Positions 4,846 to 64,000 of a stretch of 64,000 nt of DNA are shown in pieces (within the stretch, counting starts at the first letter, position 1; each line of letters starts with the position of its first letter). This DNA comes from Macrostomum hystrix. Lineage: Eukaryota > Animalia > Platyhelminthes. Both the position numbers and the translations under genes were made by a program. The notes beneath the pieces were generated by a model, which was not told the DNA's origin, did not search any database, and saw only the letters and a program-made list of their open reading frames with translations. Where the stretch lies: positions 17,918,001 through 17,982,000 of the forward strand of contig CATNEN010000038.1 in assembly GCA_950097015.1 (NCBI GenBank), given 5' to 3'.

Positions 4846-4867
4846 ACAAAGACCTTAGCTCTGTAAA

Positions 4868-26383: not shown

Positions 26384-26439
26384 GTAAGGCTTTGAACCCC
26401 GTTTGCGCTTCTGCTCACTGGGCCTCATTTTCCTGGGCC

Positions 26440-30906: not shown

Positions 30907-30957
30907 GGCGTTGATTTCAAGCGCATTCTGATATTGTTTGTTATCAATTTTTCAGCA

Positions 30958-35542: not shown

Positions 35543-35699
35543 GGGGTGATTGGCAGAGCGGTCTAACGCGTTTTCCTCTCGCACCAAGGTCCCTAAGCTC
35601 GATTCCGCGGCGAGGCCACTTTCATTTGAGGCGCAGCCGCCGAGAGAAGGCTTGGGGGCTTGTCGTGCAATTTACGCCCTTGAGGGCCAACCTCCAAGG
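35543..35699 (+). mobile_element. SINE family 1, 5' half
   Basis: TGGCAGAGCGG (A box) and AGCTCGATTCC (B box). Truncated at CCAACCTCCAAGG. Confidence 0.85.
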
Positions 35700-36522: not shown

Positions 36523-37015
36523 CTAATAAGACATGCGAAATGCTAAATAAGAATGGCTCAGCTGTTTGTGAAATTCAAGATTTTTTTATGGTTAGCAACG
36601 ACCAGATGAAGATCGCAAAACAGTAAATAAAAAACTAAAACTAAAACTTTAAAGAATACTTCCGTAAAGAGTAACTAGGAGTCTAAAAAGCTATCACAAA
36701 AGACACTCAAAAAATTCGAAGCCGTTTTTCAATTTAATCTTTGACTGAAGTTCAAGACTATTAATAATTTCTGACTATTCCACTACACAAGAAAGTCTTA
36801 ACAAAATCCTAAAACAAAGAATACTCACAACAGAAACGTCTTCATTGAGATTAAACTGTCATTTTTCTAATGTCTTCAAGTTTTTCTCAGCCTTTTCTAG
36901 GTCGCTTTTACCAGAAACCAACACATAAGAACCTTCAAAAAATTATGTACTTAAAAGTATAAATTTTGACTAAACAAACAATCCTTATCTCATCATCAAT
37001 GCATCAGCATCAGCA

Positions 37016-40000
37016 TCAAAGCAGCTCGCACGTCTTCGACCTCCCAGCAGCGCTATGAACCCTCGCCAGCTTCTCTCGCTTCTTTTCGCTCATCGGAGGT
37101 CCATGGTTCGAGATGCCACCATCGTCATCTGCCATTGAGTTTGTTGAGACATTGGTCGCGACTTCTGGCAAAAACTGCGTCAGTCTGGCATGGATCTCCT
37201 GGAACTTCTCTCCTCGCCACGTCAGCTGATCGTCCGCGTCCTTGTACATCTGGACGTAGATGAGCTGAGTGAGCGGCATCGACATCGGACCCTCCGGAGG
37301 CCAGGTCATCTTCTCCAGCATCACTGGCACAATCGGCTTGCGGATGGCGTCAGCGAGACTCACCTCGCGCCTGCAGTTGGGCGAGGCGGCGTACTTGGGA
37401 GTGACGAAGGCCAGCAGAACGCTGCAGCCGCGAACGCCGCGGTCGATCTTCTCGTACAGCGAGTCGCCTCCGCCCATCTGGAAGATGTCCATCCAGCAGG
37501 TGAATCCCAGACTGCTGAGTCGCGAGTAGAGCGCCTTCACCTCTGTCTGCTTTGCCCACTGGTACGAGAGAAACACCTGACACGCTGCTTGAGGTGCAGC
37601 CGACTGTGCGGAGCTGTCACTTCCGCCGTCTTTGCCGGCCGACTTGTCGGTTCTGGCATCCCCCTTCCGGTCCGGCAGCACGATGATCTCGTCAGCAATG
37701 GGCGGCTGCCACCAGTTTGCGTACTCAGCAGCCACCGAGTCATAGTCGGGCGCAACGGCCAACCGAATTTGAGCCAGCAGCTCTGAGAACTTGTCCGGCG
37801 GCCAGAACACTCCGCCGGCTGAGCCACCGGCCTTGCCACCACTCCGATCGAACATGCGGATGTACAGGTACTCTGTGAGCAGAGGACCCATGGCTCCCTC
37901 AGGAGGCCAGGACACTCGCTCCAGCTGCACAGGAATCAGGTGCTTGTTCAGCGACACCGACAAGTTCAGCTGCAATGGAGAAATCATGCATTTCAGCCAA
38001 ATATGATTGTACTTTAGCACCTTTAGCACTCGTCATGACCGATCACTCACCTCTCGTCTGCAGTTGTCCGACTTTGAGTACTTCTCAGTCACGCACGCGA
38101 TCACCACTTTTGCGGATCGAATTCCAGCATCGATGGCTGAGAACAGCTTGTCTCCGCCTCCCATCTGACCAATGTCCATCCAGCAGCGATATCCGGCCTT
38201 CTCAAGGTGCTGCTTGAGCATCTTCACCTCCGCCTGATGCGCCCACTGGTAGCTGAGGAAGACGTTGCGAGGAGCCGTGAATTCGACCGGATCGTCCGAT
38301 GCAGCCGACTCTGCAACCAAATGGGACGAATCATTTATTCAGACGACACCGCAACAGCAGCTCACGTGACACTCACCTGCGTTGAGAATGGACGCCTCGA
38401 CTATGGCTGCTGCGTCGAGCCGATTCATCTCCTTGAGCTGCTGAAGCACTGCCTTGGACGCCTCTGCTGCTCTGTTGTTTGCGTAGAACTCAGCCAACAG
38501 ACTCATGCACGGGTCCGGAGTCGTCGTCCATGCTCGAATGTCATCAGCTGTGAAGTTGAGCCTCTGAGCCAGCAGTCGCCAGTCAGTGTCGGACTCCGGA
38601 TTCATCAGGCGCGAGACCTCGCGAGACCACGCGGGAGCCGCACTCAGAGTCTTCAGGATGCAGTTTAGGTGAAGAGCGACTGCACTGGACTCGGAGTATG
38701 CTCAAAATGATGCAAATGACAGCTCACCTTCAGGTCGATCTCCTCCACCTTCTCGCCCAGCACTCCCACAGTCACATTCAGGTCGTCAACACGTCCTTCG
38801 GTGACCTCCACGCGTCCACGAACTTGACCGAGCTCGTCTCTGGTCTGATCCACGCGACCCGACACGTCGTCCACCTTGTGGGCGGTCTCGCTCAGGCCTC
38901 GCTCGAGTCCTCCGATCTTGCCGCTCTGCTCAGTGACCTGGCCTTCCAGACCGACCAGCGAGCGGTTCGCAATCACATCGAGCAGGTGGTTGCAGGCGTC
39001 GAGCAGTGCGGGACTCGACTTCCACCGCTTGATGTCGGACTCTCGCTCGGCCAGCAGCTGCGGACTGTCAACTCCGACGCGTCGCATCAGCGCGAGGCAG
39101 CCGGCGAGCTTGTCCGGAGCCGAGTCCAGCGACAGGTGGTGGTTCACGATGTCACAGATGGCCGTCATTAGATGAGCAGTATTAAAGCCGCACTTTCCCA
39201 TAGTCGTGATGACTTGTGCGACTAGATCAATGCTAGATTTGGCTGCATCCGTCAGCTGGTCCATGCAGCTGGACATGAGCTGTTGTTGATTGTCTGCGAG
39301 AGACGCTAATCCATTAAGTACAATCTGCTGGAAGGGATTGGGAACCTGCAGCATTGACAGGAGGAAGTCGCGCATCCTTCCTGCATTGAACTTGCAGTTT
39401 AACTTGCACACGTTGCATACCAAATGGATCAAAACTGGCTGTAGGACCTCTTCGCTTTCAATGAGATCCATGATTGCCACGACTTGAGCAGCCAACTCAT
39501 CAGGTACCTCAGTTGCTGTCACGCCTATCAAACAACCTGTTTTAGATAGAAAGATATGACAAGCTACTTCTCTTACCCGATGGTATTACGCAGCCTTTAT
39601 CTACGATATTCTTACCTGTCAGACTGGATGCGAGTGTGAGAAACTCTTGAGATCCTTTTGCCTTGCTTATCAGCTGCAGAAGCAGTGGGAAGTGCGACAG
39701 GAACTTAAACATTGTTTTGCCCGTTGTTCCCATGCAGCTGATTAAGCCGTAGTTAAGCACAGAAGCATAGGATTCGGGATTATCCAGAGCTTTTTCTACG
39801 ACCCTGATGTAGAGCGGGTACAGCTGAACATTGACTGGCAGCATCTGCAATGCCGTTTAGTAGCGATAGTACACTGAAGTAGGAAATGCGAGACCATTGT
39901 ATCTTGCATGCATGAAACTATAATCTCTAGAAAATGGCACAAGACTCACAGTCTCTGGAGACTGGGAACCCAGCAGGTAGCTGGACAGGCTGACCAGTAC

Positions 40001-43000
40001 TGAGCCCTCTGGAGAAAGCGATTCATTGCCCGACATGTCATTCAGCATTAAGTCGCGCTCGAGGCAGATCTCATAGATTGTCCTCAGCTTGTCGACACTG
40101 TTGTGGATCTCAGTGGCAGGCTTGGATGTGCTGATATTCGCGTCGTTTCATCGAATGCGTTGAGAACAGTTTGAGAAGTTTTCACGATATTTTTAATGGT
40201 TAAATAAAGAGACATTTCCAAGCTTGCTAACGTAACATCAAATTATAAATTAAAGTTAAATGGGAAGCAATAGGTACTGAAAAGTGCATCCCATGGGCTG
40301 GGAGTCGATCTCCCGACCTCTTGGTCAGTAGTCAGAAACTGAAATGTCCGAGACTCGTTTTACCGAGTCTCACAATGTGCTATTTGCACTTTACCAGTTT
40401 ATTAGTCAGCCAAAATATCTAGCCCATGTTGATATCCACTTGCTTTGATTTACTAAACGTCCAAAGTCCATTTGTTAAAGAATCCTACTAATCTAGTAGT
40501 TATATCGGGTATCTGAGTGCAGCTCGTACTTACCTCATAAAGCTCACGAAGTTTAAAAGTACACAATGGTAGTTGAAAGATTCGCGGAAGTTTTCCACAG
40601 TTGTCAACGGATTTCGCAGCGACTCGATCAGGGTGTCCAACACGGACTGGAACTGGTCGACAAGAGTTGGCCAGTAGAAAAGGCTCTCATTCCACCAGCT
40701 GACGCAGGTCAGCAAGCAGATGCTGCGCGCAGACATCACCTTGTACAGGAGGCTGAGCAGCTTCAGTTGAAGCTCTCTCTCCTGCATGACCTTCTTGGCT
40801 GGTGACTCGCTGCAGTTGCGGGATTAAGAAGTTAAAGCTGATTAAATATGTTTGTGTAAGCCATCCCAAATATATAATTGCGTTAGTGTTGTACTCTAGA
40901 TTAGTATTGGTATTGTGAAAGTGAAAATCTTAAACATCGTTCAGAATAAATTGAATTCTATTTCTAATTAAGCGCTTATATAGTTAAAAATAGCAATGGC
41001 CAATGAACAATGCCAGTCAAAAATACTGGGATTTCCGATTCGTGTCTCACAATACATCCTTGATGAAATCCCGCAGTACCCTGCTGATTTTGCTGAAGGA
41101 TGTGCATAGCTCCGGATTCACTCTCTGCTCTTCATTCAGCCTGCTATCAAGCTGGACTAGTCTCTCTGAGCACTTGTCTATGAACAGCATAATGCTGGGT
41201 TGAAACTTCTGCAAATATAGAAAAAAACTATAAACAAACATTGTTTTGAATTCAAAGTCACATGACTGAAAGTGACCAGAATATCTTCAATGACCTTAGC
41301 ATTCAACTGAATCTTCTTCATTGCCTGTTCGTCCATAAACATTCGCCGAAAGTAATCGTCGAACTGTTTGCAGGAAACAGTCAGTATTCTGAGGTACCCT
41401 GGCAGGCACACGATCAGGTCGTCAATTGTGGCCTGCAGCACTGGCAGAAGCCTATCAAAGATCCTCTCACGGGCTTCCTTGTACAGGGTGTCTATCGGCC
41501 CCAGCCTTTTGTTATTTTCTTTCACCGGCTTGCTGAGTAGACACTTGGTGTCCGCTGGCTCCTTCAGCTCGGACTGGATGCAAGGAAAATCCTACAATGT
41601 CCGATAGTTGTTAACGAGTTCGATTGTGACTGCAAAATCCTATGCCATACTATCGAGTGCACATATCTATAGCTTTGGATGCTTGTCGTGCAATTGAAGC
41701 CTATCAGGGCAACCTACAAGGAACAGTGAAAGTGTACACTGGCTGACAATGAGAAAGTCAGGGCACATGTACACACTTGTATACACTTGTGTGAGGATGT
41801 GCCTGCGTACATTACGAGCAATCTGTGTTCATGTGAACCCAGTAGTCAGCGGAGTAAGCAGAATTGCCTCCTCGCTGGCTGCGTATTGTAACTAAATAAA
41901 GTGCCCACAGCCCTCCTGCAAATGTAACGAATAATAATAGTACTATTATTATGTACTCTGCTAAAGCTAGACTGCAAAAGGAGTTGTCGGTCTGTCAGTT
42001 CAGAAAGGTTTTGCCAGCTCGTAGCTTTTAACTTCCTAGTTTAGACGATGATAGAGTCGAGTACATCTCAACTCTGGATTGCATTTTACTTTTTTGGCTG
42101 AAGGCCACACGTTGGCCCGATTGGAACAAACAAATTTTTAAGCAACTAAACAGGAAATTTTTAGAAAAACAATATTAGCGACTCGTACCTTAAAGGTCAA
42201 CTTCCTGCTTATAGTTAGATCGTAGATTCGATTGATCAGTGTGACGGCTGGTTTGAGGACACCTTCGCTCTTGGCTACCCTGATGCGCTTCAGACAAAGC
42301 CGCAATGCCTGATCGGCCAGGTAAGAGAAGCTTGTATCCGGAAAGGTACTGCAATGTTTGCAATATTAATCACCTGCAGTCACACTCGGAATTTACCAAT
42401 CAATAGAATCATAAGACTCAAGTTTAAAGACTCACTCAAACGTGTGACCGATGCTTCTCAGAGCTGCGTCCGTCTCCTCAACGCAGTCTGCTGACATTTC
42501 TTCGTCAGCCAGCTTGTCAACAATGTCCAGCACCGCTTTCATGAAGCTCTCATCGTCGGCAAAGTGCTTAAGAGATCAAAAAAAGATTGGATGAAGAAGA
42601 ATCTTATTTGGAGATTTTGCTTAAAGCAAAAAATATCGCTTCACTCACAAGCACTGCAGATGTCAGCTCAGAGCTATTCTTATAGTCCTTGAGTTTTTCT
42701 ACCACACTGCTTATCACGTGACTCCGGTATTGAATTGTATGAACACTTTCCGAGTTGCACTTCTTTAGAAAGTCCAAATAGATGTCCTTGATCAAGCTTG
42801 ATTGATCGAAAATCATATGATTGCTAAAACATTTTTACCGAATAAATATATAATCTTGGAGGCATAAGCTACTCAAGTTGAAACCTAGACTTGCACTCAC
42901 CTGAAACTTCTAATGAATACAGACGTTGTCCTGTGCTGAAGTGTGTACCGAGCGTGCGATGCGTCGTCAGAGTCGACTACCTCGTCAATTTTTGCCTTCC

Positions 43001-43995
43001 CCATTGCGAGCAGCAGCTGTTTTAAGCTAGTCGGATCCTGTGGAAGCATTAAATTTTTTTTTGTTTTATTGTTAGTTAAAATTTTCTTTTAATAGAAGGA
43101 ATCCGAAAATACCTCGAAAACCGATTCATCCAAGAACTGCGACAGCCTGTCGAGAATGTCTGCACTGAAGCCGGTGCAACCGTGGGCAAGGCAAGCGCAG
43201 ATGACCTTCCAGAGAATTGGCTTCAGTTTCATTTTCCACTCTTCGTTTTCCAATCTGGAAAGGCAGATGTGCAGATCTTTCACGCGTGCTCATTTTGTAC
43301 TGAGTCATTAGTTACTAGGCTTAGCAGCCAGTTCCCACTCTCTGACTAGTTAGCCATTGCCGCTGTATGGCCAAGCATAGTCCTATCCAATTAGTTAATT
43401 TAGTTAATTAATTAGAGGTTGAGCTAAAGATTTCTAGTAGCTTTTGTCCTTTGGAAACCGTTGGTTCGTATTCCCATTGTTTTTTTCACCGCTCTTCTGG
43501 GCCACCCGCGGAATTTCTGTCAGTGAGTTCATTCCAGCAAATCGGAGAGTTCAAATGAGCCCAGCCAATCGTATCGATGTTGTGACGTCGGCGTCTTCGC
43601 CGGACTTTATCGGAGCGTGCAAAACGAACGAGAAATTCAGGACTCTCTTGGATAATAGATTCCTTCTAGACTCAGGCATAAGAAATGAGACGAGACAAAA
43701 CTTTAAAAAGTACAAAACTTATGATTAAATTATACCAGAACTGAAATTCATCTCACATGGGACCTCGTACGTGATCAATGAACCGATTCACACAGTTGTC
43801 TCCAGGAGAGTTCCTTCTGGGCCACTGTTTGCTCTCAGTCTTGTCGAACAGATCCCCCATGGCTTGCATCAAAGCAATGACATCAGTTGCAGTCATGGCC
43901 TCGTGAGGAAAGTGCTTTCTGCAGTGATCTTGCACAGCATCGTCCGCATTTTCCGCAGTAGTTTGAAAATTTAGACTTCGAAAGTAGGCATCCAT
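37016..43995 (-). CDS. Death-TIR-TIR protein copy A1: helical N-terminal region (type A), coiled coil, Death, TIR, TIR, CaaX-like end; ~15 exons
   Basis: 3' exons: 39536-38728 (coiled coil), 38650-38377 (Death: AWSREVSRLMNPESDTDWRLLAQRLNF..LQQLKEMNRLDAAAIVE), 38310-38051 plus 37969-37016 (two TIRs: VFLSYQW..CWMDI.QMGGGD.L...ID.G.R...KY..S.NCRRE). Upstream exons include 39844-39616, 40130-39950, 40809-40534, 41208-41051, 41591-~41290 and six more up to ATG 43995 (MDAYFRSL). Some 5' boundaries are approximate. Confidence 0.85.
41675..41925 (+). mobile_element. SINE family 1, 3' part (intron of copy A1; duplicated at 60715-60970)
   Basis: CTGACAATGAGAAAGTCAGG, GCAGAATTGCCTCCTCGCTGGCTGC, GCCCTCCTGCAA. 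Confidence 0.8.
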
Positions 43996-44057
43996 TCTGC
44001 TGAAGACGGAGTTTTAAAAACAGTTGTATATATAAGCACCAATATCAGCCCTTTTAA

Positions 44058-44220
44058 GGCAGTGTACACTCTCCTAGAAGGTTAGCTTTCAAGGGCGTAA
44101 ATTGCACAACAAGCCACTAAGCTTTCTTTTCACATCTGCGCCCCAAATAAATGTGGCGTCGCCGCGGAATCGAGCTCAGGGACATTGGTGTGAGAGACAA
44201 ACGCGTCCTACCACTCAATC
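44058..44220 (-). mobile_element. SINE family 1, 5' part, just upstream of the A1 start (duplicated at 63101-63263)
   Basis: GAGCTCGATTCCGCGGCG on the minus strand. Confidence 0.8.
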
Positions 44221-44691
44221 CCATTTTACCGGATTTCTAACCGATGACTCTACTGGGCTATGTGTAACTTGTGTGTATTCTAATGTCCACAAGAAAGGAA
44301 AATGACTGACGTAGGCTGTCGGCTTTGTGAGCGTAGAAATCACGGAACTCAAACTCTGGAATCTAAGTAGTTTTAATATATTTGGTACTGCTTGATTAAC
44401 TGTCATTTAGGCGCAGAATGCTCATTCGACTATAAATACTCTTTATAGTGGAATATAAAATCATTAATCAGAAATAAATTAGATGGATTTTGTCTGCGAC
44501 GATCGCAAAACAGTCGTCGCAAGACCATGTGTAAAGCATGTACATTGAAGGAGACAGAGATATCTACGATATAGTACTTTAAATTTTAGTGTGATTGAGA
44601 ATATATGACGAATTTATGTATATCAATTATGTATAGTTTGATTAATTAGAATTTAGTCGATGGTATTACTCCTGAAGTATCAGCATTGAAA

Positions 44692-47600
44692 TTAAAGCAG
44701 CTCGCACGTCTTCGACCTCCCAGCAGCGCTATGAACCTTCGCCAGCTTCTCTCGCTTCTTTTCGCTCATCGGAGGTCCATGGTTCGAGATGCCACCACCA
44801 TCGTCATCTGCCATTGAGTTTGTTGAGACATTGGTCGCGACTTCTGGCAAAAACTGCGTCAGTCTGGTGTGGATCTCCTGGAACTTCTCTCCTCGCCACG
44901 TCAGCTGATCGTCCGCGTCCTTGTACATCTGGACGTAGATGAGCTGGGTGAGCGGCATCGACATCGGACCCTCTGGAGGCCAGGCCATCTTCTCCAGCAT
45001 CACTGGCACAATCGGCTTGCGGATGGCGTCAGCGAGACTCACCTCGCGCCTGCAGTTGGGCGAGGCGGCGTACTTGGGAGTGACGAAGGCCAGCAGAACA
45101 CTGCAGCCGCGAACGCCGCGGTCGATCTTCTCGTACAGCGAGTCGCCTCCGCCCATCTGGAAGATGTCCATCCAGCAGGTGAATCCCAGACTGCTGAGTC
45201 GCGAGTAGAGCGCCTTCACCTCTGTCTGCTTTGCCCACTGGTACGAGAGAAACACCTGACACGCTGCTTGAGGTGCAGCCGACTGTGCGGAGCTGTCACT
45301 TCCGCCGTCTTTGCCGGCCGACTTGTCGGTTCTGGCATCCCCCTTCCGGTCCGGCAGCACGATGATCTCGTCAGCAATGGGCGGCTGCCACCAGTTTGCG
45401 TACTCAGCAGCCACCGAGTCATAGTCGGGCGCAACGGCCAACCGAATTTGAGCCAGCAGCTCTGAGAACTTGTCCGGCGGCCAGAACACTCCGCCGGCTG
45501 AGCCACCGGCCTTGCCACCACTCCGATCGAACATGCGGATGTACAGGTACTCTGTGAGCAGAGGACCCATGGCTCCCTCAGGAGGCCAGGACACTCGCTC
45601 CAGCTGCACAGGAATCAGGTGCTTGTTCAGCGACACCGACAAGTTCAGCTGCAATCGAGAAATCATGCATTTCAGCCAAATATGATTGCACTTTAGCACC
45701 TTTAGCACTCGTCATGACCGATCACTCACCTCTCGTCTGCAGTTGTCCGACTTTGAGTACTTCTCAGTCACGCACGCGATCACCACTTTTGCGGATCGAA
45801 TTCCAGCATCGATGGCTGAGAACAGCTTGTCTCCGCCTCCCATCTGACCAATGTCCATCCAGCAGCGATATCCGGCCTTCTCAAGGTGCTGCTTGAGCAT
45901 CTTCACCTCCGCCTGATGCGCCCACTGGTAGCTGAGGAAGACGTTGCGAGGAGCCGTGAACTCGACCGGATCGTCCGATGCAGCCGACTCTGCAACCAAA
46001 TGGGACGAATCATTTATTCAGACGACACCGCAACAGCAGCTCACGTGACACTCACCTGCGTTGAGAATGGACGCCTCGACTATGGCTGCTGCGTCGAGCC
46101 GATTCATCTCCTTGAGCTGCTGAAGCACTGCCTTGGACGCCTCTGCTGCTCTGTTGTTTGCGTAGAACTCAGCCAACAGACTCATGCACGGGTCCGGAGT
46201 CGTCGTCCATGCTCGAATGTCATCAGCTGTGAAGTTGAGCCTCTGAGCCAGCAGTCGCCAGTCAGTGTCGGACTCCGGATTCATCAGGCGCGAGACCTCG
46301 CGAGACCACGCGGGAGCCGCACTCAGAGTCTTCAGGATGCAGTTTAGGTGAAGAGCGACTGCACTGGACTCGGAGTATGCTCAAAATGATGCAAATGACA
46401 GCTCACCTTCAGGTCGATCTCCTCCACCTTCTCGCCCAGCACTCCCACAGTCACATTCAGGTCGTCAACACGTCCTTCGGTGACCTCCACGCGTCCACGA
46501 ACTTGACCGAGCTCGTCTCTGGTCTGATCCACGCGACCCGACACGTCGTCCACCTTGTGAGCGGTGTCGCTCAGGCCTCGCTCGAGTCCTCCGATCTTGC
46601 CGCTCTGCTCAGTGACCTGGCCTTCCAGACCGACCAGCGAGCGGTTCGCAATCACATCGAGCAGGTGGTTGCAGGCGTCGAGCAGTGCGGGACTCGACTT
46701 CCACCGCTTGATGTCGGACTCTCGCTCGGCCAGCAGCTGCGGACTGTCAACTCCGACGCGTCGCATCAGCGCGAGGCAGCCGGCGAGCTTGTCCGGAGCC
46801 GAGTCCAACGACAGGTGGTGGTTCACGATGTCACAGATGGCCGTCATTAGATGAGCAGTATCGAATTTGCACTTCTCGATGGTGTCGATTGCGTGAACAA
46901 CAAGATTGATGTTGGATTTTGCGGTGGCTGTTAGAGGGTTCAGGCAGTCATTCATGACATGCTGTTGTGTTGCAGCAAGAGAGGCCAGTGCTGCCATGGA
47001 CGGCACTTGGTGGTCTCCCTGCTTCTGCAGAATCTTCAGCAAGTAGTCTCGAAGGAACTCTGGATGGTGTTTGCTGTTCAATTTGCAAGCATTGTTAATC
47101 AAATATGTAAGCTGACTATCGCTGTTTGGAACACCTTGAAATAAGTCAACCAAGTTCGGAATTTCGGCAGCCAAGTTATCCGGCATTTCTTCTTTTGAGC
47201 TGTTGTACAGATTGTCTGGAAAGATTAGCTCATAGACATGTAGGTTAACACTCGTGATTCATAATAAAATGACGATGTGCAACTTACACAAAAGTCCCGC
47301 TGCTATTCCCGCATACAATTGTGGCTGTTTGTTTTTCGTTTTCTTGAAGGCTTCAATTAGCTGCGGTAGGTGAGGAAGCGAAGGAAACACTGTTTCCGGG
47401 CTGTTTCCAAGGCACAAGCTGAGGCCCATTACGAGGCCCGTAGCGGAATCGGCCTTTGCGCTGCTTTGAAATTTATTGGCTGCCACAATGTACAAAGGAA
47501 GCAGCTCTTTGCTGACGTCAACTAGCTATGAAAAATTGGAAGGACGTGTGGGATTAGCATAAAATAAAGATAGGCATTTTAAGCAACTAATTTCCTACCT

Positions 47601-54329: not shown

Positions 54330-54519
54330 GCAAGCTGAAGTAAGAGTACGGGATGGCAGTTTTGGAATTACATTTTTCGATTTTTTGGTGTTTAGTTGCA
54401 TTTTAAACTAGAAACGTAATAGGTAAAAACGTAGTCGGAAAATACCTATGCAGTTGAAGGCATATGAGTAATACTAGACAATACCCAGTCCTGTCCTATA
54501 CATAAGACACACAAGAGGT

Positions 54520-55625
54520 CCTGCTGAAGACACAACAGAAGTCAATACCCTAGCTAGACGCACAACAGAAGTCAATACACTAGCTGAGGCACAACATAAG
54601 TCGATACATTAGCTAGAGGCACAACAGAAGTCAATACACTAGCTGAAGACACAACAGAAGTCGATACCTTAGCTAGAGGCACAACAGAAGTCGATACATT
54701 AGCTGAGGCACAACAGAAGTCGATACCTTAGCTAGAGACACAACAGAAGTCAATACCCTTATAGCTGAAGACACAACGGAAGTCGATACATTAGCTAGAG
54801 GCACAACAGAAGTCGATATACTAGCTAGAGGCACAACAGAAGTCAATACCCTAGCTGAAGACACAACGGAAGTCGATACACTAGCTAGAGACACAACAGA
54901 AGTCAATACCCTAGCTAGAGGCACAACTGAAGTCAATACATTAGCTAGAGGCACAACAGAAGTCGATACCTTAGCTAGAGACACAACAGAAGTCGATACA
55001 TTAGCTAGAGGCACAACAGAAGTCGATACATGAGCTAAAGGTACAATAGAAGTCAATACACTAGCTAGAGGCACAACAGAAGTCGATATATTAGCTAGAG
55101 GCACAACAGAAGTTGATACACTAGCTAGAGGCACAACATTAGTCAATACACTAGCTGAAGACACAACAGAAGTCGATACATTAGCTAGAGGCACAACATT
55201 AGTCAATACACTAGCTGAAGACACAACAGAAGTCAATACCCTAGCTTAAGGCACAACAGAAGTCGATACTTTAGCTGAGGCACAACAGAAGTCGATATAC
55301 TAGCTGAGGCACAACAGAAGTCGATACATTAGCTAGAGGCACAACAGAAGTCGATACACTAGCTAAAGGCACAACAGAAGTCGATACATTAGCTAGAGAC
55401 ACAACAGAAGTCGATACCTTAGCTAGAGACACAACAGAAGTCAATACACTAGCTGAAGACACAACAGAAGTCAATACCCTAGCTGAAGACACAACAGAAG
55501 TCGATACCTTAGCTAGAGACACAACAGAAGTCGATACCTTAGCTAGAGACACAACAGAAGTCAATACCCTAGCTGAAGACACAACAGAAGTCAATACCCT
55601 AGCTGAGGCACAACTGAAGTCGATA
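54520..55625. repeat. ~30-bp minisatellite AGCTAGAGGCACAACAGAAGTCGATACATT between copies A2 and B
   Basis: About 37 tandem units. Confidence 0.97.
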
Positions 55626-56056
55626 AAACAAGTCGAGTAAAATATTATTACTTCAGTATCTAAAAACAAACTTTAGGTCGCCGTTAAAGTGCACTAAAGA
55701 CTAATGTAGAGAAAAAAAGCTTAAAACCAACGTTAGTTCTATCACTAAAAGTAGAAAGTCGGATTCGACCACGTACGAGGTATATATAAATGTCTTCATA
55801 CGAGGTCGTAATTGTAAAAATGATCAAAGAATAAATAAATAAGGAAAAAATATATACGATTGTAAATCATGATAAAAATCATTAGTACGCTCGGATACTA
55901 TAGATTTTCTAACAGGTGAGTAAATATATTCAGAATTTTAGAGAAGGACTTGTTTAAGACGAGCTAAAACATGAGGAATCTTGAAACAATTAACTTGAAG
56001 GACCTATTGTTAAAATATGTCTAAACACTAGAACTGAACTGATGCACAGATCGGCA

Positions 56057-59000
56057 TCACAGCAGCTCGCACGTCTTCGACCGCCCAGCAGCGCTATGAA
56101 CTCTGGCCAGCTTCTCTCGCTTCTTCTCACTCAGAGGGGGTCGCTGGTTCGAACCGCCACCGGAACCAGTCGGGTTGCCAGCAGTGATGGTCGTGGAGAC
56201 CTCTTTGATGCTTACGCTTTCTTTAACAGCCGCTTCGGGCACAAACTGCGTCAGTCTGGCATGGATCTCCTGGAACTTCTCTCCTCGCCACGTCAGCTGA
56301 TCGTCCGCGTCCTTGTACATCTGGACGTAGATGAGCTGGGTGAGCGGCATCGACATCGGACCCTCTGGAGGCCAGGCCATCTTCTCCAGCATCACTGGCA
56401 CAATCGGCTTGCGGATGGCGTCAGCGAGACTCACCTCGCGCCTGCAGTTGGGCGAGGCGGCGTACTTGGGAGTGACGAAGGCCAGCAGAACACTGCAGCC
56501 GCGAACGCCGCGGTCGATCTTCTCGTACAGCGAGTCGCCTCCGCCCATCTGGAAGATGTCCATCCAGCAGGTGAATCCCAGACTGCTGAGTCGCGAGTAG
56601 AGCGCCTTCACCTCTGTCTGCTTTGCCCACTGGTACGAGAGAAACACCTGACACGCTGCTTGAGGTGCAGCCGACTGTGCGGAGCTGTCACTTCCGCCGT
56701 CTTTGCCGGCCGACTTGTCGGTTCTGGCATCCCCCTTCCGGTCCGGCAGCACGATGATCTCGTCAGCAATGGGCGGCTGCCACCAGTTTGCGTACTCAGC
56801 AGCCACCGAGTCATAGTCGGGCGCAACGGCCAACCGAATTTGAGCCAGCAGCTCTGAGAACTTGTCCGGCGGCCAGAACACTCCGCCGGCTGAGCCACCG
56901 GCCTTGCCACCACTCCGATCGAACATGCGGATGTACAGGTACTCTGTGAGCAGAGGACCCATGGCTCCCTCAGGAGGCCAGGACACTCGCTCCAGCTGCA
57001 CAGGAATCAGGTGCTTGTTCAGCGACACCGACAAGTTCAGCTGCAATCGAGAAATCATGCATTTCAGCCAAATATGATTGCACTTTAGCACCTTTAGCAC
57101 TCGTCATGACCGATCACTCACCTCTCGTCTGCAGTTGTCCGACTTTGAGTACTTCTCAGTCACGCACGCGATCACCACTTTTGCGGATCGAATTCCAGCA
57201 TCGATGGCTGAGAACAGCTTGTCTCCGCCTCCCATCTGACCAATGTCCATCCAGCAGCGATATCCGGCCTTCTCAAGGTGCTGCTTGAGCATCTTCACCT
57301 CCGCCTGATGCGCCCACTGGTAGCTGAGGAAGACGTTGCGAGGAGCCGTGAACTCGACCGGATCGTCCGATGCAGCCGACTCTGCAACCAAATGGGACGA
57401 ATCATTTATTCAGACGACACCGCAACAGCAGCTCACGTGACACTCACCTGCGTTGAGAATGGACGCCTCGACTATGGCTGCTGCGTCGAGCCGATTCATC
57501 TCCTTGAGCTGCTGAAGCACTGCCTTGGACGCCTCTGCTGCTCTGTTGTTTGCGTAGAACTCAGCCAACAGACTCATGCACGGGTCCGGAGTCGTCGTCC
57601 ATGCTCGAATGTCATCAGCTGTGAAGTTGAGCCTCTGAGCCAGCAGTCGCCAGTCAGTGTCGGACTCGGGATTCATCAGGCGCGAGACCTCGCGAGACCA
57701 CGCGGGAGCCGCACTCAGAGTCTTCAGGATGCAGTTTAGGTGAAGAGCGACTGCACTGGACTCGGAGTATGCTCAAAATGATGCAAATGACAGCTCACCT
57801 TCAGGTCGATCTCCTCCACCTTCTCGCCCAGCACTCCCACAGTCACATTCAGGTCGTCAACACGTCCTTCGGTGACCTCCACGCGTCCACGAACTTGACC
57901 GAGCTCGTCTCTGGTCTGATCCACGCGACCCGACACGTCGTCCACCTTGTGAGCGGTGTCGCTCAGGCCTCGCTCGAGTCCTCCGATCTTGCCGCTCTGC
58001 TCAGTGACCTGGCCTTCCAGACCGACCAGCGAGCGGTTCGCAATCACATCGAGCAGGTGGTTGCAGGCGTCGAGCAGTGCGGGACTCGACTTCCACCGCT
58101 TGATGTCGGACTCTCGCTCGGCCAGCAGCTGCGGACTGTCAACTCCGACGCGTCGCATCAGCGCGAGGCAGCCGGCGAGCTTGTCCGGAGCCGAGTCCAA
58201 CGACAGGTGGTGGTTCACGATGTCACAGATGGCCGTCATTAGATGAGCAGTATTAAAGCCGCACTTTCCCATAGTCGTGATGACTTGTGCGACTAGATCA
58301 ATGCTAGATTTGGCTGCATCCGTCAGCTGGTCCATGCAGCTGGACATGAGCTGTTGTTGATTGTCTGCGAGAGACGCTAATCCATTAAGTACAATCTGCT
58401 GGAAGGGATTGGGAACCTGCAGCATTGACAGGAGGAAGTCGCGCATCCTTCCTGCATTGAACTTGCAGTTTAACTTGCACACGTTGCATACCAAATGGAT
58501 CAAAACTGGCTGTAGGACCTCTTCGCTTTCAATGAGATCCATGATTGCCACGACTTGAGCAGCCAACTCATCAGGTACCTCAGTTGCTGTCACGCCTATC
58601 AAACAACCTGTTTTAGATAGAAAGATATGACAAGCTACTTCTCTTACCCGATGGTATAACGCAGCCTTAATCTACGATATTCTTACCTGTCAGACTGGAT
58701 GCGAGTGTGAGAAACTCTTGAGATCCTTTTGCCTTGCTTATCAGCTGCAGAAGCAGTGGGAAGTGCGACAGGAACTTAAACATTGTTTTGCCCGTTGTTC
58801 CCATGCAGCTGATTAAGCCGTAGTTAAGCACAGAAGCATAGGATTCGGGATTATCCAGAGCTTTTTCTACGACCCTGATGTAGAGCGGGTACAGCTGAAC
58901 ATTGACTGGCAGCATCTGCAATGCCGTTTAGTAGCGATAGTACACTGAAGTAGGAAATGCGAGACCATTGTATCTTGCATGCATGAAACTATAATCTCTA

Positions 59001-62000
59001 GAAAATGGCACAAGACTCACAGTCTCTGGAGACTGGGAACCCAGCAGGTAGCTGGACAGGCTGACCAGTACTGAGCCCTCTGGAGAAAGCGATTCATTGC
59101 CCGACATGTCATTCAGCATTAAGTCGCGCTCGAGGCAGATCTCATAGATTGTCCTCAGCTTGTCGACACTGTTGTGGATCTCAGTGGCAGGCTTGGATGT
59201 GCTGATATTCGCGTCGTTTCATCAAATGCGTTGAGAACAGTTTGAGAAGTTTTCACGATATTTTAAATGGTTAAATAAAGAGACATTTCCAAGCTTGCTA
59301 ACGTAGCATCAAATTATAAATTAAAGTTGAATGGGAAGCAATAGGTACTGAAAAGTGCATCCCAGGGAGTCGATCTCCCGACATCTTGGTCAGTAGTCAG
59401 AAACTGAAATGTCCGAGACTCGTTTTACCGAGTCTCACAATGTGCTATTTGCACTTTACCTGTTTATTAGTCAGCCAAAATATCTAGCCCATGTTGATAT
59501 CCACTTGCTTTGATTTACTAAACGTCCAAAGTCCATTTGTTAAAGAATCCTACTAATCTAGTAGTTCTATCGGGTATCTGAGTGCAGCTCGTACTTACCT
59601 CATAAAGCTCACGAAGTTTAAAAGTACACAATGGTAGTTGAAAGATTCGCGGAAGTTTTCCACAGTTGTCAACGGATTTCGCAGCGACTCGATCAGGGTG
59701 TCCAACACGGACTGGAACTGGTCGACAAGCGTTGGCCAGTAGAAAAGGCTCTCATTCCACCAGCTGACGCAGGTCAGCAAGCAGATGCTGCGCGCAGACA
59801 TCACCTTGTACAGGAGGCTGAGCAGCTTCAGTTGAAGCTCTCTCTCCTGCATGACCTTCTTGGCTGGTGACTCGCTGCAGTTGCGGGATTAAGAAGTTAA
59901 AGCTGATTAAATATTTTTGTGTAAGTGTTGTACTCTAGATTGGTATTGGTATTGTGAAAGTGAAAATTGTAAACATCGTTCAGAATAAATTCAATTCTAT
60001 TTCTAATTAAGCGCTTATATAGTTAAAAATAGCAATGACCAAAGAACAATGCCAGTCAAAAATACTGGGATTTCCGATTCGTGTCTCACAATACATCCTT
60101 GATGAAATCCCGCAGTACCCTGCTGACTTTGCTGAAGGATGTGCATAGCTCCGGATTCACTCTCTGCTCTTCATTCAGCCTGCTATCAAGCTGGACTAGT
60201 CTCTCTGAGCACTTGTCTATGAACAGCATAATGCTGGGTTGAAACTTCTGCAAATATAGAAAAAAACTATAAACAAACATTGTTTTGAATTCGAAGTCAC
60301 ATGACTGAAAGTGACCAGAATATCTTCAATGACCTTAGCATTCAACTGAATCTTCTTCATTGCCTGTTCGTCCATAAACATTCGCCGAAAGTAATCGTCG
60401 AACTGTTTGCAGGAAACAGTCAGTATTCTGAGGTACCCTGGCAGGCACACGATCAGGTCGTCAATTGTGGCCTGCAGCACTGGCAGAAGCCTATCAAAGA
60501 TCCTCTCACGGGCTTCCTTGTACAGGGTGTCTATCGGCCCCAGCCTTTTGTTATTTTCTTTCACCGGCTTGCTGAGTAGACACTTGGTGTCCGCTGGCTC
60601 CTTCAGCTCGGACTGGATGCAAGGAAAATCCTACAATGTCCGATAGTTGTTAACGAGTTCGATTGTGACTGCAAAATCATATGCCATACTATAGAGTGCA
60701 CATATCTATAGCTTTGGGTGCTTGTCGTGCAGTCGAAGCCTATCAGGGCAACCTACAAGGAACAGTGAAAGTGTACACTGGCTGACAATGAGAAAGTCAG
60801 GGCACATGTACACACTTGTATACACTTGTGTGAGGATGTGCCTGCGTACATTACGAGCTATCTGTGTTCATGTGAACCCAGTAGTCAGTGGAGTAAGCAG
60901 AATTGCCTCCTCGCTGGCTGCGTATTGTCACTAAATGATGTGCCAGTGCCCACAGCCCTCCTGCAAATGTAACGAATAAAAATATTACTATTATTATGTA
61001 CTCTGCTAAAGCTAGACTGCAATAGGAGTTGTCGGTCTGTCAGTTCAGAAAGGTTTTGCCAGCTCGTAGCTTTTAACTTCCTAGTTTAGACGATGATAGA
61101 GTCGAGTACATCTCAACTCTGGATTGCATTTTAATTTTTTGGCTGAAGACCACACGTTGGCCCGATTGGAACAAACAAATTTTTAAGCAACTAAACAGGA
61201 AATTTTTAGAAAAACAATATTAGCGACTCGTACCTTAAAGGTCAACTTCCTGCTTATAGTTAGATCGTAGATTCGATTGATCAGTGTGACGGCTGGTTTG
61301 AGGACACCTTCGCTCTTGGCTACCCTGATGCGCTTCAGACAAAGCCGCAATGCCTGATCGGCCAGGTAAGAGAAGCTTGTATCCGGAAAGGTACTGCAAT
61401 GTTTGCAATATTAATCACCTGCAGTCACACTCGGAATTTACAAATCAATAGAATCATAAGACTCAAGTTTAGAGACTCACTCAAACGTGTGACCGATGCT
61501 TCTCAGAGCTGCGTCCGTCTCCTCAACGCAGTCTGCTGACATTTCTTCGTCAGCCAGCTTGTCAACAATGTCCAGCACCGCTTTCATGAAGCTCTCATCG
61601 TCGGCAAAGTGCTTAAGAGATCAAAAAAAGATTGGATGAAGAAGAATCTTATTTGGAGATTTTGCTTAAAGCAAAAAATACCGCTTCACTCACAAGCACT
61701 GCAGATGTCAGCTCAGAGCTGTTCTTATAGTCCTTGAGTTTTTCTACCACACTGCTTATCACGTGACTCCGGTATTGAATTGTATGAACACTTTCCGAGT
61801 TGCACTTCTTTAGAAAGTCCAAATAGATGTCCTTGATCAAGCTTGATTGATCGAAAATCATATGATTGCTAAAACATTTTTACCGAATAAATATATAATC
61901 TTGGAGGCATAAGCTACTCAAGTTGAAACCTAGACTTGCACTCACCTGAAACTTCTAATGAATACAGACGTTGTCCTGTGCTGAAGTGTGTACCGAGCGT

Positions 62001-63038
62001 GCGATGCGTCGTCAGAGTCGACTACCTCGTCAATTTTTGCCTTCCCCATTGCGAGCAGCAGCTGTTTTAAGCTAGTCGGATCCTGTAGAAGCATTAATTT
62101 TTTTTGTTTTATTGTTAGTTAAAATTTTCTTTTAATAGAAGGAATCCGAAAATACCTCGAAAACCGATTCATCCAAGAACTGCGACAGCCTGTCGAGAAT
62201 GTCTGCACTGAAGCCGGTGCAACCGTGGGCAAGGCAAGCGCAGATGACCTTCCAGAGAATTGGCTTCAGTTTCATTTTCCACTCTTCGTTTTCCAATCTG
62301 GAAAGGCAGATGTGCAGATCTTTCACGCGTGTTCATTTTGTACTGAGTCATTAGTTACTAGGCTTAGCAGCCAGTTCCCACTCTCTAAATAGTTAGCCAT
62401 TGCCGCTGTATGGCCAAGCATAATCCTATCCAATTAGTTAATTTAGTTAATTAATTAGAGGTTGAGCTAAAGATTTCTAGTAGCTTTTGTCCTTTGGAAA
62501 CCGTTGGTTCGTATTCCCATTGTTTTTTTCACCGCCCTTCTGGGCCACCCGCGGAATTTCTGTCAGTGAGTTCATTCCAGCAAATCGGAGAGTTCAAATG
62601 AGCCCAGCCAATCGTATCGATGTTGTGACGTCGGCGTCTTCGCCGGACTTTATCGGAGTGTGCACAACGAACGAGAAATTCAGGACTCTCTTGGATAATA
62701 GATTCCTTCTAGACTCAGGCATAAGAAATGAGACGAGACAAAACTTTAAAAAGTACAAAACTTATGATTAAATTATACCAGAACTGAAATTCATCTCACA
62801 TGGGACCTCGCACGTGATCAATGAACCGATTCACACAGTTGTCTCCAGGAGAGTTCCTTCTGGGCCACTGTTTGTTCTCAGTCTTGTCGAACAGATCCCC
62901 CATGGCTTGCATCAAAGCAATGACATCAGTTGCAGTCATGGCCTCGTGAGGAAAGTGCTTTCTGCAGTGATCTTGCACAGCATCGTCCGCATTTTCCGCA
63001 GTAGTTTGAAAATTTAGACTTCGAAAGTAGGCATCCAT
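56057..63038 (-). CDS. Death-TIR-TIR protein copy A2: type A N-terminus, distinct C-terminal linker
   Basis: Nearly identical to A1 over 58252-63038. Last exon 57040-56057 has QFVPEAAVKESVSIKEVSTTITAGNPTGSGGGSNQRPPL in place of QFLPEVATNVSTNSMADDDGGISNHGPPM. Confidence 0.85.
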
Positions 63039-63734
63039 TCTGCTGAAGACGGAGTTTTAAAAACAGTTGTATATATAAGCACCAATATCAGCCCTTTTAA
63101 GGCAGTGTACACTCTCCTAGAAGGTTAGCTTTCAAGGGCGTAAATTGCACAACAAGCCACTAAGCTTTCTTTTCACATCTGCGCCCCAAATAAATGTGGC
63201 GTCGCCGCGGAATCGAGCTCAGGGACATTGGTGTGAGAGACAAACGCGTCCTACCACTCAATCCCATTTTACTGGATTTCTAACCGATGACTCTACTGGG
63301 CTATGTGTAACTTGTGTGTATTCTAATGTCCACAAGAAAGGAAAATGACTGACGTAGGCTGTCGGCTTTGTGAGCGTAGAAATCACGGAACTCAAACTCT
63401 GGAATCTAAGTAGTTTTAATATATTTGGTACTGCTTGATTAACTGTCATTTAGGCGCAGAATGCTCATTCGACTATAAATACTCTTTATAGTGGAATATA
63501 AAATCATGAATCAGAAATAAATTAGATGGATTTTGTCTGCGACGATCGCAAAACAGTCGTCGCAAGACCATGTGTAAAGCATGTACATTGAAGGAGACAG
63601 AGATATCTACGATATAGTACTTTAAATTTTAGTGTGATTGAGAATATATGACGAATTTATGTATATCAATTATGTATAGTTTGATTAATTAGAATTTAGT
63701 CGATGGTATTACTCCTGAAGTATCAGCATTGAAA

Positions 63735-64000
63735 TTAAAGCAGCTCGCACGTCTTCGACCTCCCAGCAGCGCTATGAACCTTCGCCAGCTTCTCTCGCTT
63801 CTTTTCGCTCATCGGAGGTCCATGGTTCGAGATGCCACCATCATCGTCATCTGCCATTGAGTTTGTTGAGACATTGGTCGCGACTTCTGGCAAAAACTGC
63901 GTCAGTCTGGCATGGATCTCCTGGAACTTCTCTCCTCGCCACGTCAGCTGATCGTCCGCGTCCTTGTACATCTGGACGTAGATGAGCTGGGTGAGCGGCA
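63735..64000 (-). CDS. 3' end of a fourth Death-TIR-TIR copy (continues beyond the window)
   Basis: YKDADDQLTWRGEKFQEIHARL...RSKTCELL*. Same 3' flank as copy B, offset 19,043 bp. Confidence 0.88.
   Translation of the reverse strand, partial: PLTQLIYVQMYKDADDQLTWRGEKFQEIHARLTQFLPEVATNVSTNSMADDDDGGISNHGPPMSEKKREKLAKVHSAAGRSKTCELL

Follow-up and report, generated by a model that had tools for sequence, protein, structure and literature searches.

ecTIR-DC 6 is an invertebrate-only family whose members comprise Armadillo-like repeats, a Death domain, and two TIR domains, and have neither a signal peptide nor a membrane segment, according to the accounts of the family in PMC6836662 and PMC5549309. 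The classification is that of Gerdol et al. 2017 (Dev Comp Immunol 70:145), as related in the same two papers, which also describe high expression of family members in bivalve gills. As Kruithof et al. 2007 (PMC2077338) describe, mammalian TLR1 and TLR6 are tandem paralogues with partial gene conversion, which affects the signalling part only. Orthologues are closer to each other in the N-terminal, ligand-binding part, and paralogues are closer in the C-terminal part, which contains the TIR domain. The conversion tract recurs with almost identical borders (PMC2077338).

The array in the flatworm Macrostomum hystrix consists of five head-to-tail genes in the order A1, B1, A2, B2, and C. The window, i.e., the whole stretch of 64,000 nucleotides that was analysed (contig CATNEN010000038.1, here C38), contains three complete minus-strand genes (A1, B1, and A2) and 266 nt of a fourth (B2). 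The rest of B2 and gene C lie beyond it. The genes and the repeat between them are as follows.

37016-43995, minus strand: gene A1, 15 coding exons, 1473 aa, from spliced RNA contigs and an open frame
43995-43757, 43254-43113, 43037-42901, 42823-42649, 42566-42436, 42348-42189, 41591-41295, 41208-41051, 40809-40534, 40130-39950, 39844-39616, 39536-38728, 38650-38377, 38310-38051, 37969-37016, minus strand: exons of A1
44692-54329, minus strand: gene B1, 15-exon model, 1481 aa, from homology to A, C, and the M. lignano protein and from GT/AG, with an open frame
54329-54094, 54012-53862, 53741-53596, 53019-52842, 52764-52622, 51927-51765, 50790-50494, 48895-48753, 48649-48380, 47779-47599, 47525-47288, 47215-46407, 46329-46056, 45989-45730, 45648-44692, minus strand: exons of B1
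54520-55625, no strand: 30-bp minisatellite between B1 and A2, with a longer copy in the second unit
56057-63038, minus strand: gene A2, 15 exons, 1483 aa, from exon-by-exon mapping to A1 (99.2-100% identical), with an open frame
63735-64000, minus strand: 3' end of B2, which continues to C38:17991323, outside the window
C38:17994702-18003371: gene C, next after B2 in the array, outside the window

Each of the five gene models comprises 15 exons with an open frame and encodes 1473-1483 aa. In gene A, 12 GT-AG introns are confirmed by spliced RNA contigs, including the borders of the 809- and 181-nt exons, and the remaining two cassette introns of A1 were placed from a loose end and GT/AG. The exon borders of B and C come from homology and GT/AG with assumed intron phases, and the transcription of gene C likewise rests on homology. 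The joined models entered the frame checks, the local alignments, and the dN/dS calculations; searches and folding were run with single exons or database orthologues as queries. A B-specific 13-mer extends RNA contigs beyond the cassette edge, and A2-specific letters are present in RNA contigs. For gene A, a spliced model of the kind that an initial annotation of this DNA had envisaged was obtained from RNA, with 12 of its introns seen and its frame open; the frame of B is open in its homology-based model.

Self-BLAST places the shared cassette at 37003-39182, 44679-46861, 56044-58253, and from 63722 to 64000 and onward (to 65904 past the window), with 98.8-99.75% identity among the copies. 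The DNA between the cassettes is unalignable and comprises region A (39183-44678 and 58254-63721) and region B (46862-56043). The 19-kb units A1-B1 and A2-B2 form a tandem duplication (97-99% identity), and the window therefore has two N-terminal types, each present twice. The initial annotation had described at least four minus-strand genes with a common cassette of ~2.2 kb, and N-termini in two versions, A and B, on the same exon scaffold. The cassette sharing stands, with three complete genes and 266 nt of a fourth in the window. The two versions hold for the window, but a third type, C, lies outside it. The 809- and 181-nt exons occur both in A (from RNA) and in the B model, but the matching intron phases are not independent evidence, since the phases were assumed for B and C.

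Each protein of about 1475 aa has an ARM/HEAT-like solenoid (~830 aa), a coiled coil, one Death domain, and a pair of TIR_2 domains, and its tail is a polybasic CaaX sequence. The order Death-TIR-TIR holds in the spliced A model. The following features are given for gene A1; the Death and TIR assignments of the initial annotation were borne out by the Pfam search.

38731-38958, minus strand: coiled coil, a single 76-residue helix in the AF2 model of exon 12, within the constant tract
38377-38650, minus strand: Death domain, exon 13 (Pfam Death 7.9e-8)
38051-38310, minus strand: first part of TIR domain 1, exon 14 (Pfam TIR_2 1.3e-19), which goes on in exon 15 to about 37840
37229-37576, minus strand: TIR domain 2 (Pfam TIR_2 2.5e-24)
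37019-37030, minus strand: C-terminal C-E-L-L (CaaX box), preceded by basic residues and predicted to be geranylgeranylated

The AF2 model of exon 12 consists of helical repeats with a pLDDT of 80-94. Foldseek on this exon gives ARM/HEAT proteins as the matches of top probability, but at E-values of at least 0.08, which are not significant. The family profile matches CAND1 and the AP-3 delta HEAT repeats at 6e-5, and 104 ARM/HEAT matches at E ≤0.001 were obtained with the model of an orthologue from amphioxus, the N-terminus of which can scarcely be aligned with those of the flatworm proteins. The exon 12 fold, the profile, and the amphioxus model agree with the ARM/HEAT-like N-terminus proposed earlier. 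Among coiled coils, the family profile matches the trimeric Lpp (2e-6) and P22 gp26. A three-copy model of the coiled coil scores 0.84 against 0.01 for the best control, a score that may reflect memorised solved coiled coils. The best solved Death match of the family profile is the death domain of p75NTR (2.6e-7). The top PDB matches of TIR domain 1 are PdTIR, Cat1, AbTir, and SARM1, and those of TIR domain 2 are bacterial TIRs, among them the NAD+ hydrolase AbTIR. Among solved structures the TIRs are thus nearest to SARM1 and bacterial TIRs, in line with the relation to SARM1 suggested at the outset. The motif S-x-N-C-x-x-E is invariant in both TIRs across nine orthologues, and exon 14 terminates on its Glu, which presumably corresponds to SARM1 E642. 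The Cat1 alignment ends at ...SDWCW / SDNCR, two residues before this Glu.

Like SARM1, the array proteins have an ARM-type solenoid ahead of a putative oligomerisation module and of a bacterial/NADase-type TIR, in which a Glu lies presumably at the expected motif position. The family profile matches the SARM1 TIR at 8e-4, and the orthologue model matches inhibited SARM1 (7djt) at 6.5e-5. In contrast to SARM1, they have two TIRs in place of one, an extra Death domain, a CaaX tail, and a coiled coil instead of the SAM domains; Pfam found no SAM domain in the window exons or in eight orthologues, and the coiled coil is at that place. The presence of Death and TIR within one cytosolic protein is in line with MyD88. 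The MyD88 family, however, consists of short adaptors with one N-terminal Death domain and one C-terminal PF01582-type TIR, and the array proteins (1473-1483 aa) are outside it. They differ in length (~1475 versus ~300 aa), in their tandem TIR_2-type TIRs, and in a Death domain nearest to p75NTR. PF01582 remained below its cut-off in the window, and MyD88 lacks the N-terminal solenoid and the coiled coil.

By a crude test, in which the highest 19-residue Kyte-Doolittle mean was 1.5-1.7, a signal peptide or membrane segment is absent, and the proteins are predicted to be cytosolic. The tail ...RSKTCELL is common to all five array genes; the basic stretch and the CaaX box read ...EKKREKLARVHSAAGRSKTCELL, with L as the X residue. 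Among 32 family proteins, which come from six phyla, 30 have a C-x-x-(L/I/S) terminus. Judged from this terminus, the proteins are probably prenylated and attached to the membrane.

By their domain content, the array proteins fit the already catalogued ecTIR-DC family 6 (PMC6836662), with which they have in common an ARM-like helical N-terminus, a central Death domain, two TIRs, and a cytosolic location. Flatworm members, a five-gene array, and a conversion tract are not mentioned in the passages on ecTIR-DC 6 in PMC6836662 and PMC5549309. Database relatives with the same architecture come from Saccoglossus, Branchiostoma, Dimorphilus, Tubulanus, Haliotis, bivalves, Owenia, and Antedon; the expected homologues in other invertebrates are therefore present, in six phyla. 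The core has about 100 invariant residues across nine sequences. Tandem multi-copy loci are seen in bivalves. Argopecten paralogues are 48.8% identical in the N-terminus and 98.0% in the core, while orthologue cores are 90-92% identical, and Ruditapes paralogues likewise have a variable N-terminus and a constant core.

The N-termini of the flatworm genes are 32% (A-B), 37% (A-C), and 34% (B-C) identical, with saturated synonymous sites, and are taken from this divergence to be old paralogue types, long separated. A and B align over their full length and have the motifs quoted earlier in common, which agrees with the protein-level homology first seen by eye. The whole genome (220 Mb) has just these five genes and three N-terminal types; the earlier alternative of only two types is not the case. 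Type C is 64.5% identical in the N-terminus and 89% in the core to the M. lignano protein Mlig018443, and these values mark it as the orthologue of the M. lignano gene. No M. lignano protein of type A or B was found by a search of limited reach, in which the query, either the full M. lignano protein or its residues 1-976, gave only itself and a 97% copy. A and B may have arisen after speciation, with very fast divergence. The flatworm N-terminus profile barely finds other phyla (best full-sequence E 6.5e-4, 7.6 bits, in a 13-sequence set), which leaves the N-terminal tree unrooted and the duplications undated relative to the species split. Pairwise dS among A, B, and C is saturated at 3.7-4.7, and dN/dS among them is therefore unusable. 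The recent duplicates have an N-terminal dN/dS of 0.19 (A1/A2, 5 changes) and 0.39 (B1/B2, 7 changes). Invariant positions are scattered over the entire N-terminus, and a hypervariable block is absent.

The last ~2 kb of the genes is at least 99% identical, including three introns, and has a sharp edge within exon 12, where homology stops. The tract encodes the end of the solenoid, the coiled coil, the Death domain, and both TIRs. Its copies in the window are the following.

37003-39182, minus strand: homogenised tract copy 1, with an abrupt edge at 39182 and 99.0% identity to 44679-46861; it runs from the final 455 nt of exon 12 through exons 13-15, with three introns, to 13 nt beyond the stop
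44679-46861, minus strand: homogenised tract copy 2, from self-BLAST and window-by-window differences
55641-58253, minus strand: homogenised tract copy 3, with a 3' tail and 400-nt 3' flank like gene C, not A1

Between A1 and B1, dS is 0.015 in the cassette versus 3.7 in the N-terminus. The three cassette introns have nearly zero differences, and divergence at the tract edge falls from about 50% to about 0 inside 100 nt. Variant patches are distributed as a mosaic among the copies, e.g., B2 and C have some in common. The core is 97-99.4% identical between the paralogues versus 89% to the M. lignano protein, and an excess of paralogue over orthologue identity in the core only is the signature of gene conversion. 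This pattern indicates that conversion between neighbours keeps the last ~2 kb of every gene uniform. Purifying selection alone was rejected as the cause of the cassette identity, because introns and synonymous sites are identical as well. Alternative splicing onto common constant exons, as in protocadherins, was also rejected, since a separate cassette belongs to every N-terminal region and the variable/constant border lies inside exon 12. The array resembles TLR1/TLR6 in its tandem paralogues with a paralogue-like core and an orthologue-like N-terminus. It differs in that the proteins are cytosolic with an ARM/HEAT part in place of LRRs, the contrast is far stronger (dS 0.015 versus >3), three gene types are involved, and introns lie inside the tract. 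The novelty once ascribed to the variable/constant organisation is not upheld, as the same is found in mammalian TLR1/TLR6 (PMC2077338) and in bivalve family members.

A2 is a recent duplicate of A1, but its C-terminal tail is C-type. The segment 55641-58242 matches 76286-78887 (extended coordinates, on the gene C side) at 99.4%. From these matches, the A-B pair appears duplicated by unequal recombination between the A and C cassettes, which gave A2 a C-type tail and 3' flank. It is very unlikely that A2 and B2 are an assembler's false tandem duplication of two haplotypes, with a real locus of three genes (A, B, and C). The two units differ by just 0.5-1.7% in introns, near-identical cassettes of 2.2 kb are the kind of repeat that misleads assemblers, and A1- and A2-type letters are mixed inside single RNA contigs, as alleles would be. 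The joint, however, has exactly the structure that unequal crossing-over between A and C cassettes predicts, with a C tail and 400 nt of C 3' flank on A2. Moreover, the minisatellite is of unequal length in the two units, the assembly is chromosome-scale with 42 contigs, and both A1- and A2-type variants occur in all four RNA samples.

The reading that we consider likely comprises a five-gene array of three old ecTIR-DC 6 paralogue types, a converted 3' tract, an A-B pair duplicated by recombination, and a mechanism with a shared output. Parallel oligomers, likely trimers, would probably form through the coiled coil, as the model of this segment suggests. By analogy with the ARM domain of SARM1, the solenoid would be the regulatory or ligand-binding part. 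The output would be that of the Death domain and the tandem TIRs, each with what is presumably the Glu used by NAD-cleaving TIRs. The paralogues would have one output in common and different inputs, and homogenisation would preserve their fit to partners they have in common or to one another. Core-only homogenisation in bivalves as well suggests a general constraint on how ecTIR-DC 6 proteins cooperate. A bolder proposal, speculative and rather unlikely, regards the ecTIR-DC 6 proteins as SARM1-like TIR switches that cleave NAD, form trimers on a lipid anchor, and have exchangeable ARM/HEAT sensors. Their paralogues would co-assemble via the coiled coil, Death, and TIR modules; selection, beyond proximity, would then preserve core identity through gene conversion, independently in flatworms, scallops, and clams, as the sensors drift apart. 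If true, this would be a compact sensor system without NLRs or TLRs, testable in Macrostomum.

The role need not be in defence. The proteins could have a conserved cell-biological job in membrane-proximal signalling or NAD metabolism, with paralogues subfunctionalised by tissue or endogenous partner and core conversion as a passive by-product of proximity and strong constraint. This is a possibility of some weight, though we do not expect it to be correct. The extreme conservation of the core across phyla, and at 89% between Macrostomum species, points to a fixed set of endogenous partners; the family is mostly low-copy; and the tract edge is the start of deep conservation, as expected if conversion merely persists with homology. 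On the other side, TIR and Death domains are overwhelmingly linked to immunity and cell death in other systems, and core-only homogenisation in three lineages hints at selection over accident. The initial annotation had proposed a candidate diversified intracellular immune-receptor system. In such a repertoire, a solenoid pathogen sensor under diversifying selection would be joined to a fixed output, as in NLR/R-gene clusters. The variable/constant layout is genuine, and ARM/HEAT solenoids are able to bind ligands and have a regulatory role in SARM1, itself among the top structural matches of the orthologue model. The N-termini also evolve ~3 times faster than the core, even between orthologues, the limited-reach protein search found no A or B orthologue in M. 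lignano, and bivalves have tandem multi-copy loci and, by the accounts in PMC6836662 and PMC5549309, high gill expression. Nevertheless, a genome-wide total of five genes and three types, a type C stably conserved with M. lignano, and duplicates with low dN/dS on very few changes and no hypervariable block make such a repertoire quite improbable.

The array is a clean example of a known process, partial gene conversion, and not a large diversified immune-receptor repertoire. It is a natural experiment: at a single position within an exon, the synonymous divergence of a gene pair rises from ~0.015 to saturation. On one side of this position lies the ARM/HEAT half, which evolves fast, and on the other the signalling half, which hardly varies across Bilateria. 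To a named family without a known function it adds testable features: a coiled coil modelled as a parallel trimer, a p75NTR-like Death domain, two SARM1/bacterial-type TIRs with the presumed key Glu, and a CaaX box conserved in six phyla. RNAi and transgenesis are established in M. lignano, which has the C orthologue (Mlig018443), and the mechanism is therefore directly testable there.

The 5' end of A1 has a trans-splice site.

43999-44001, minus strand: trans-splice acceptor with its AG at 44001-44000, 5 nt before the start codon of A1

The Macrostomum spliced leader is present on RNA contigs at this acceptor, and each of the four runs has a loose end of 23 nt at 44000. Rfam matched no family at the spliced-leader loci. 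The spliced-leader 23-mer has 33 copies in the genome, and at one locus (L005) it is followed by G/GTAAG.

The array comprises five head-to-tail genes on the minus strand, A1, B1, A2, B2, and C, of which C and most of B2 lie beyond the window. Its layout was derived from self-comparison of the window, and of the window extended by 38 kb on the same contig. Five sites hold a 2.2-kb cassette, encoding a coiled coil, a Death domain, and two TIR domains, and the copies are 98.8–99.75% identical. The regions between them belong to three N-terminal types, A, B, and C, and show no alignment between types at the DNA level.

Cassettes and N-terminal regions from the self-comparison (all minus strand; positions above 64000 are extended coordinates)
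37003-39182, cassette copy 1
39183-44678, type A region
44679-46861, cassette copy 2
46862-56043, type B region
56044-58253, cassette copy 3
58254-63721, type A region
63722-65904, cassette copy 4
65905-76700, type B region
76705-78887, cassette copy 5
beyond 78888, type C region

A search of the assembly (220 Mb, 42 contigs) with the exon spanning the cassette edge returned exactly these five copies, and an N-terminal exon returned the same five only. The genome has 33 TIR_2 matches, 10 of which are within the array.

Spliced RNA contigs, placed on 38301-44300, cover gene A and show 12 joints, each of them GT-AG in minus-strand orientation. They come from four small public runs that contain about half of the words sampled from 38300-44300. 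Two further cassette introns were placed from a loose contig end and GT/AG sites. Gene A1 has 15 coding exons with an open frame of 4422 nt (1473 aa), and the 809-nt and 181-nt exons noted in the initial annotation are both present in it. The models of B1 and C were built by tblastn with A exons and an M. lignano protein, with GT/AG sites and the intron phases of A assumed, and those of A2 and B2 by exon-by-exon mapping. All five are open (1473, 1481, 1483, 1481, and 1476 aa), and an acceptor-like ...ttcag occurs a few bases 5′ of the ATG in B and C, as in A. The joined models were used in scripts only; search and fold queries were single exons or database orthologues. RNA contigs of gene A stop at 39153-39164, adjoining the variable/constant edge, like de Bruijn contigs at a branch. 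Loose contig ends at 39182 run on into 13 B-specific letters (46862 and 65905), which indicates that B is transcribed too. In intron 9 of A1 (40195-40563), low-depth RNA contigs (about 4) carry a 6-nt deletion and several differences; these may be intron retention, unspliced precursor, or transcripts of the A2 copy.

The mRNA of gene A is trans-spliced. Its contigs open with 23 letters not found at the locus, and this leader, ...TGCGAAGACTCAATTTATTGCATG, is joined at an AG 5 nt upstream of the start codon (43999-44001). Across the genome there are 33 copies of the leader, some of them in regular arrays, and the copy at one locus (L005, 1490-1530) reads ...CGGTCTCTTACTGCGAAGACTCAATTTATTGCATG/GTAAG. 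We take it to match the M. lignano spliced leader, which, together with the nearest database protein (below), places the window in a Macrostomum flatworm. Leader copies are partly spaced about 11.6 kb apart on contigs C15, C17, and C42, with GTAAG coming next. On the gene A mRNA, the ATG within the leader starts a short upstream ORF that is out of frame.

The N-terminus (residues 1–827) and the core differ sharply in identity. N-terminal identity is 32% for A–B, 37% for A–C, and 34% for B–C, whereas the core ranges from 97 to 99.4% among paralogues. Type C and the M. lignano protein share 64.5% of the N-terminus and 89% of the core; for A or B, the values are about 34% and 89%. The paralogues are thus closer to each other than to the orthologue in the core only. 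Within 100 nt, A1–B1 DNA divergence drops from near 50% to near 0, and is then about 0.5% over about 1950–2180 nt, three cassette introns included. The A1–B1 dS is 0.015 in the cassette versus 3.7 (saturated) in the N-terminus. Purifying selection alone is ruled out as the cause of cassette identity, since introns and synonymous sites are identical too. The edge falls within exon 12 and within the helical domain, at neither a domain nor an exon border, and coincides with the start of a block conserved across phyla. Variant patches are shared as a mosaic, one cluster being common to B2 and C and missing from A1, B1, and A2. Gene conversion, bounded upstream by loss of homology, explains the edge, the mosaic, and the cassette identity. 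GC3 is 0.73 in the cassette versus 0.57–0.64 upstream, which fits biased gene conversion without proving it.

The intervals 37162-55625 and 56233-74610 (extended coordinates) form a 19-kb tandem duplication of 97–99% identity, A1-B1 and A2-B2. In the A2 cassette, the C-terminal tail is of the C type, a 10-residue insertion included, and 400 nt of the 3′ flank of C are present as well (55641-58242 versus 76286-78887, extended coordinates, 99.4%). This is the expected product of unequal crossing-over between the cassettes of C and A. Codon differences comprise 7 synonymous and 3 non-synonymous for A1/A2, and 6 and 5 for B1/B2; the N-terminal dN/dS is 0.19 and 0.39, respectively. At three A-specific sites in the RNA contigs, A2-type letters are mixed with A1-type letters, so both variants exist in the sampled animals, as two loci or two alleles.

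From the sequence, the initial annotation had proposed a diversified repertoire of immune receptors, with variable N-termini on a constant module. The fast evolution of the N-terminus favors this, as does the failure to detect orthologues of A and B in M. lignano by protein searches, for which annotation gaps or limited search reach may account. However, the genome has just three N-terminal types, of which C is a stable orthologue; amino-acid change is not in excess between the recent duplicates, and conserved positions are distributed along the entire N-terminus. A diversified repertoire is therefore a weak explanation. Three old paralogue types, a 3′ module subject to conversion, and a recent duplication through non-allelic recombination are well supported.

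The tandem paralogues TLR1 and TLR6 of mammals diverge in the ligand-binding part but remain similar in the C-terminal part, TIR domain included, through independent gene conversion (PMC2077338). The flatworm array has the same pattern of a converted signalling part and a divergent N-terminal part. Several bivalves have two to four family members per contig. Between Argopecten paralogues a and b, identity is 48.8% in the N-terminus and 98.0% in the core; with their closest scallop orthologues it is up to 71.8% in the N-terminus but just 90–92% in the core. In Ruditapes, paralogue a versus b or c gives 53% and 96–97%. At the protein level, these two patterns indicate that core-only homogenisation recurs in the family; other bivalve pairs (Mizuhopecten, Pecten a/d) show none. 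The flatworm array is its most extreme case.

The nearest database protein is an M. lignano "Death domain-containing protein" (P0001/P0023), and Pfam identifies Death and two TIR_2 domains. The same order of long N-terminus, coiled coil, Death, and two TIR_2 was recovered by an exhaustive HMMER search with exon 12 in M. lignano, Saccoglossus, Branchiostoma, Dimorphilus, Tubulanus, and Haliotis, and a second search extends it to many bivalves, Owenia, and the crinoid Antedon. The family is already known by name (ecTIR-DC family 6, PMC6836662), and a mussel atlas reports its expression in gill (PMC5549309).

The predicted fold of exon 12 (pLDDT 80) consists of helical repeats followed by one 76-residue helix, and its high-probability Foldseek matches are ARM/HEAT proteins, though at E 0.08 or more. 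The profile of nine orthologues matches HEAT repeats of CAND1 and AP-3 delta (about 6e-5). In the model of the amphioxus orthologue, residues 30–500 form about 30 short helices, and its ARM/HEAT matches at E 0.001 or better number 104, inhibited SARM1 among them. For the M. lignano N-terminus, the language-model neighbours are HEAT families (0.90–0.91), a lead only. Coiled-coil matches of the family profile are trimeric: Lpp (2e-6), P22 gp26, reovirus sigma-1, and trimeric adhesins. Three copies of exon 12 residues 186–269 model as a parallel in-register bundle, at 0.84 versus 0.01 for the best control, a score that may reflect model memory. Three copies also depart from the calibration set, in which 21 of 30 proteins solved as pairs, but 0 of 23 solved as single chains, passed the mark. 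Contact agreement between runs is 100%, with partner pLDDT 91 or more.

By family profile, the Death domain is closest to p75NTR (2.6e-7), not MyD88. Both TIR domains are nearest to bacterial TIRs and SARM1, and S-x-N-C-x-x-E is invariant in both in all nine orthologues; to judge from this motif, its glutamate may be the catalytic one. All five array genes end in ...RSKTCELL. A CaaX box, mostly with X = L and preceded by basic residues, ends 30 of 32 family proteins; in the other two the conserved tail is missing, and these seem to be incomplete models, P0001 ending well before its 97% copy P0023. No membrane-like segment was found. The array proteins may be lipid-anchored oligomers. The solenoid would be the regulatory or sensing part, and the output would be tandem NADase-type TIRs with the Death domain. 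Some scallop members (P0028, P0030, P0037, P0039) additionally have a WW domain (PF00397) at the N-terminus and, upstream of the CaaX box, a long stretch rich in Gln and Pro. They form a separate subfamily, with a core just 76% identical to other scallop paralogues.

Other features of the window
30883-35000, plus strand, gene with Flavodoxin_1 (1.9e-26) and FAD_binding_1 (4.3e-18) exons
11174-12052, minus strand, ORF with P-element transposase-like HTH and TNP-like RNase H domains (1.8e-7)
1920-2575, 16060-17171, 26438-27748, 31598-32143, 35584-36568, 54520-55625, minisatellites
41669-41899, 49298-49556, 53149-53497, 4508-4846, 24834-25047, dispersed repeat copies

The plus-strand gene, to judge from its domains a diflavin reductase of the cytochrome P450 reductase kind, adjoins the array on the downstream side and is convergent with A1. 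The minus-strand ORF is probably a transposon remnant. Long minisatellites with periods of 16, 22, 30, and 31 nt are abundant, and the 16-nt array of 16.0–17.2 kb reappears inverted at 31.6–32.1 kb, overlapping ORFs of the reductase gene region. The dispersed repeat (about 250–350 nt, 77–85% identity) has copies within A and B introns as well as in other parts of the window, and the very high RNA-contig depth over 41701-41900 indicates an abundant, transcribed element.
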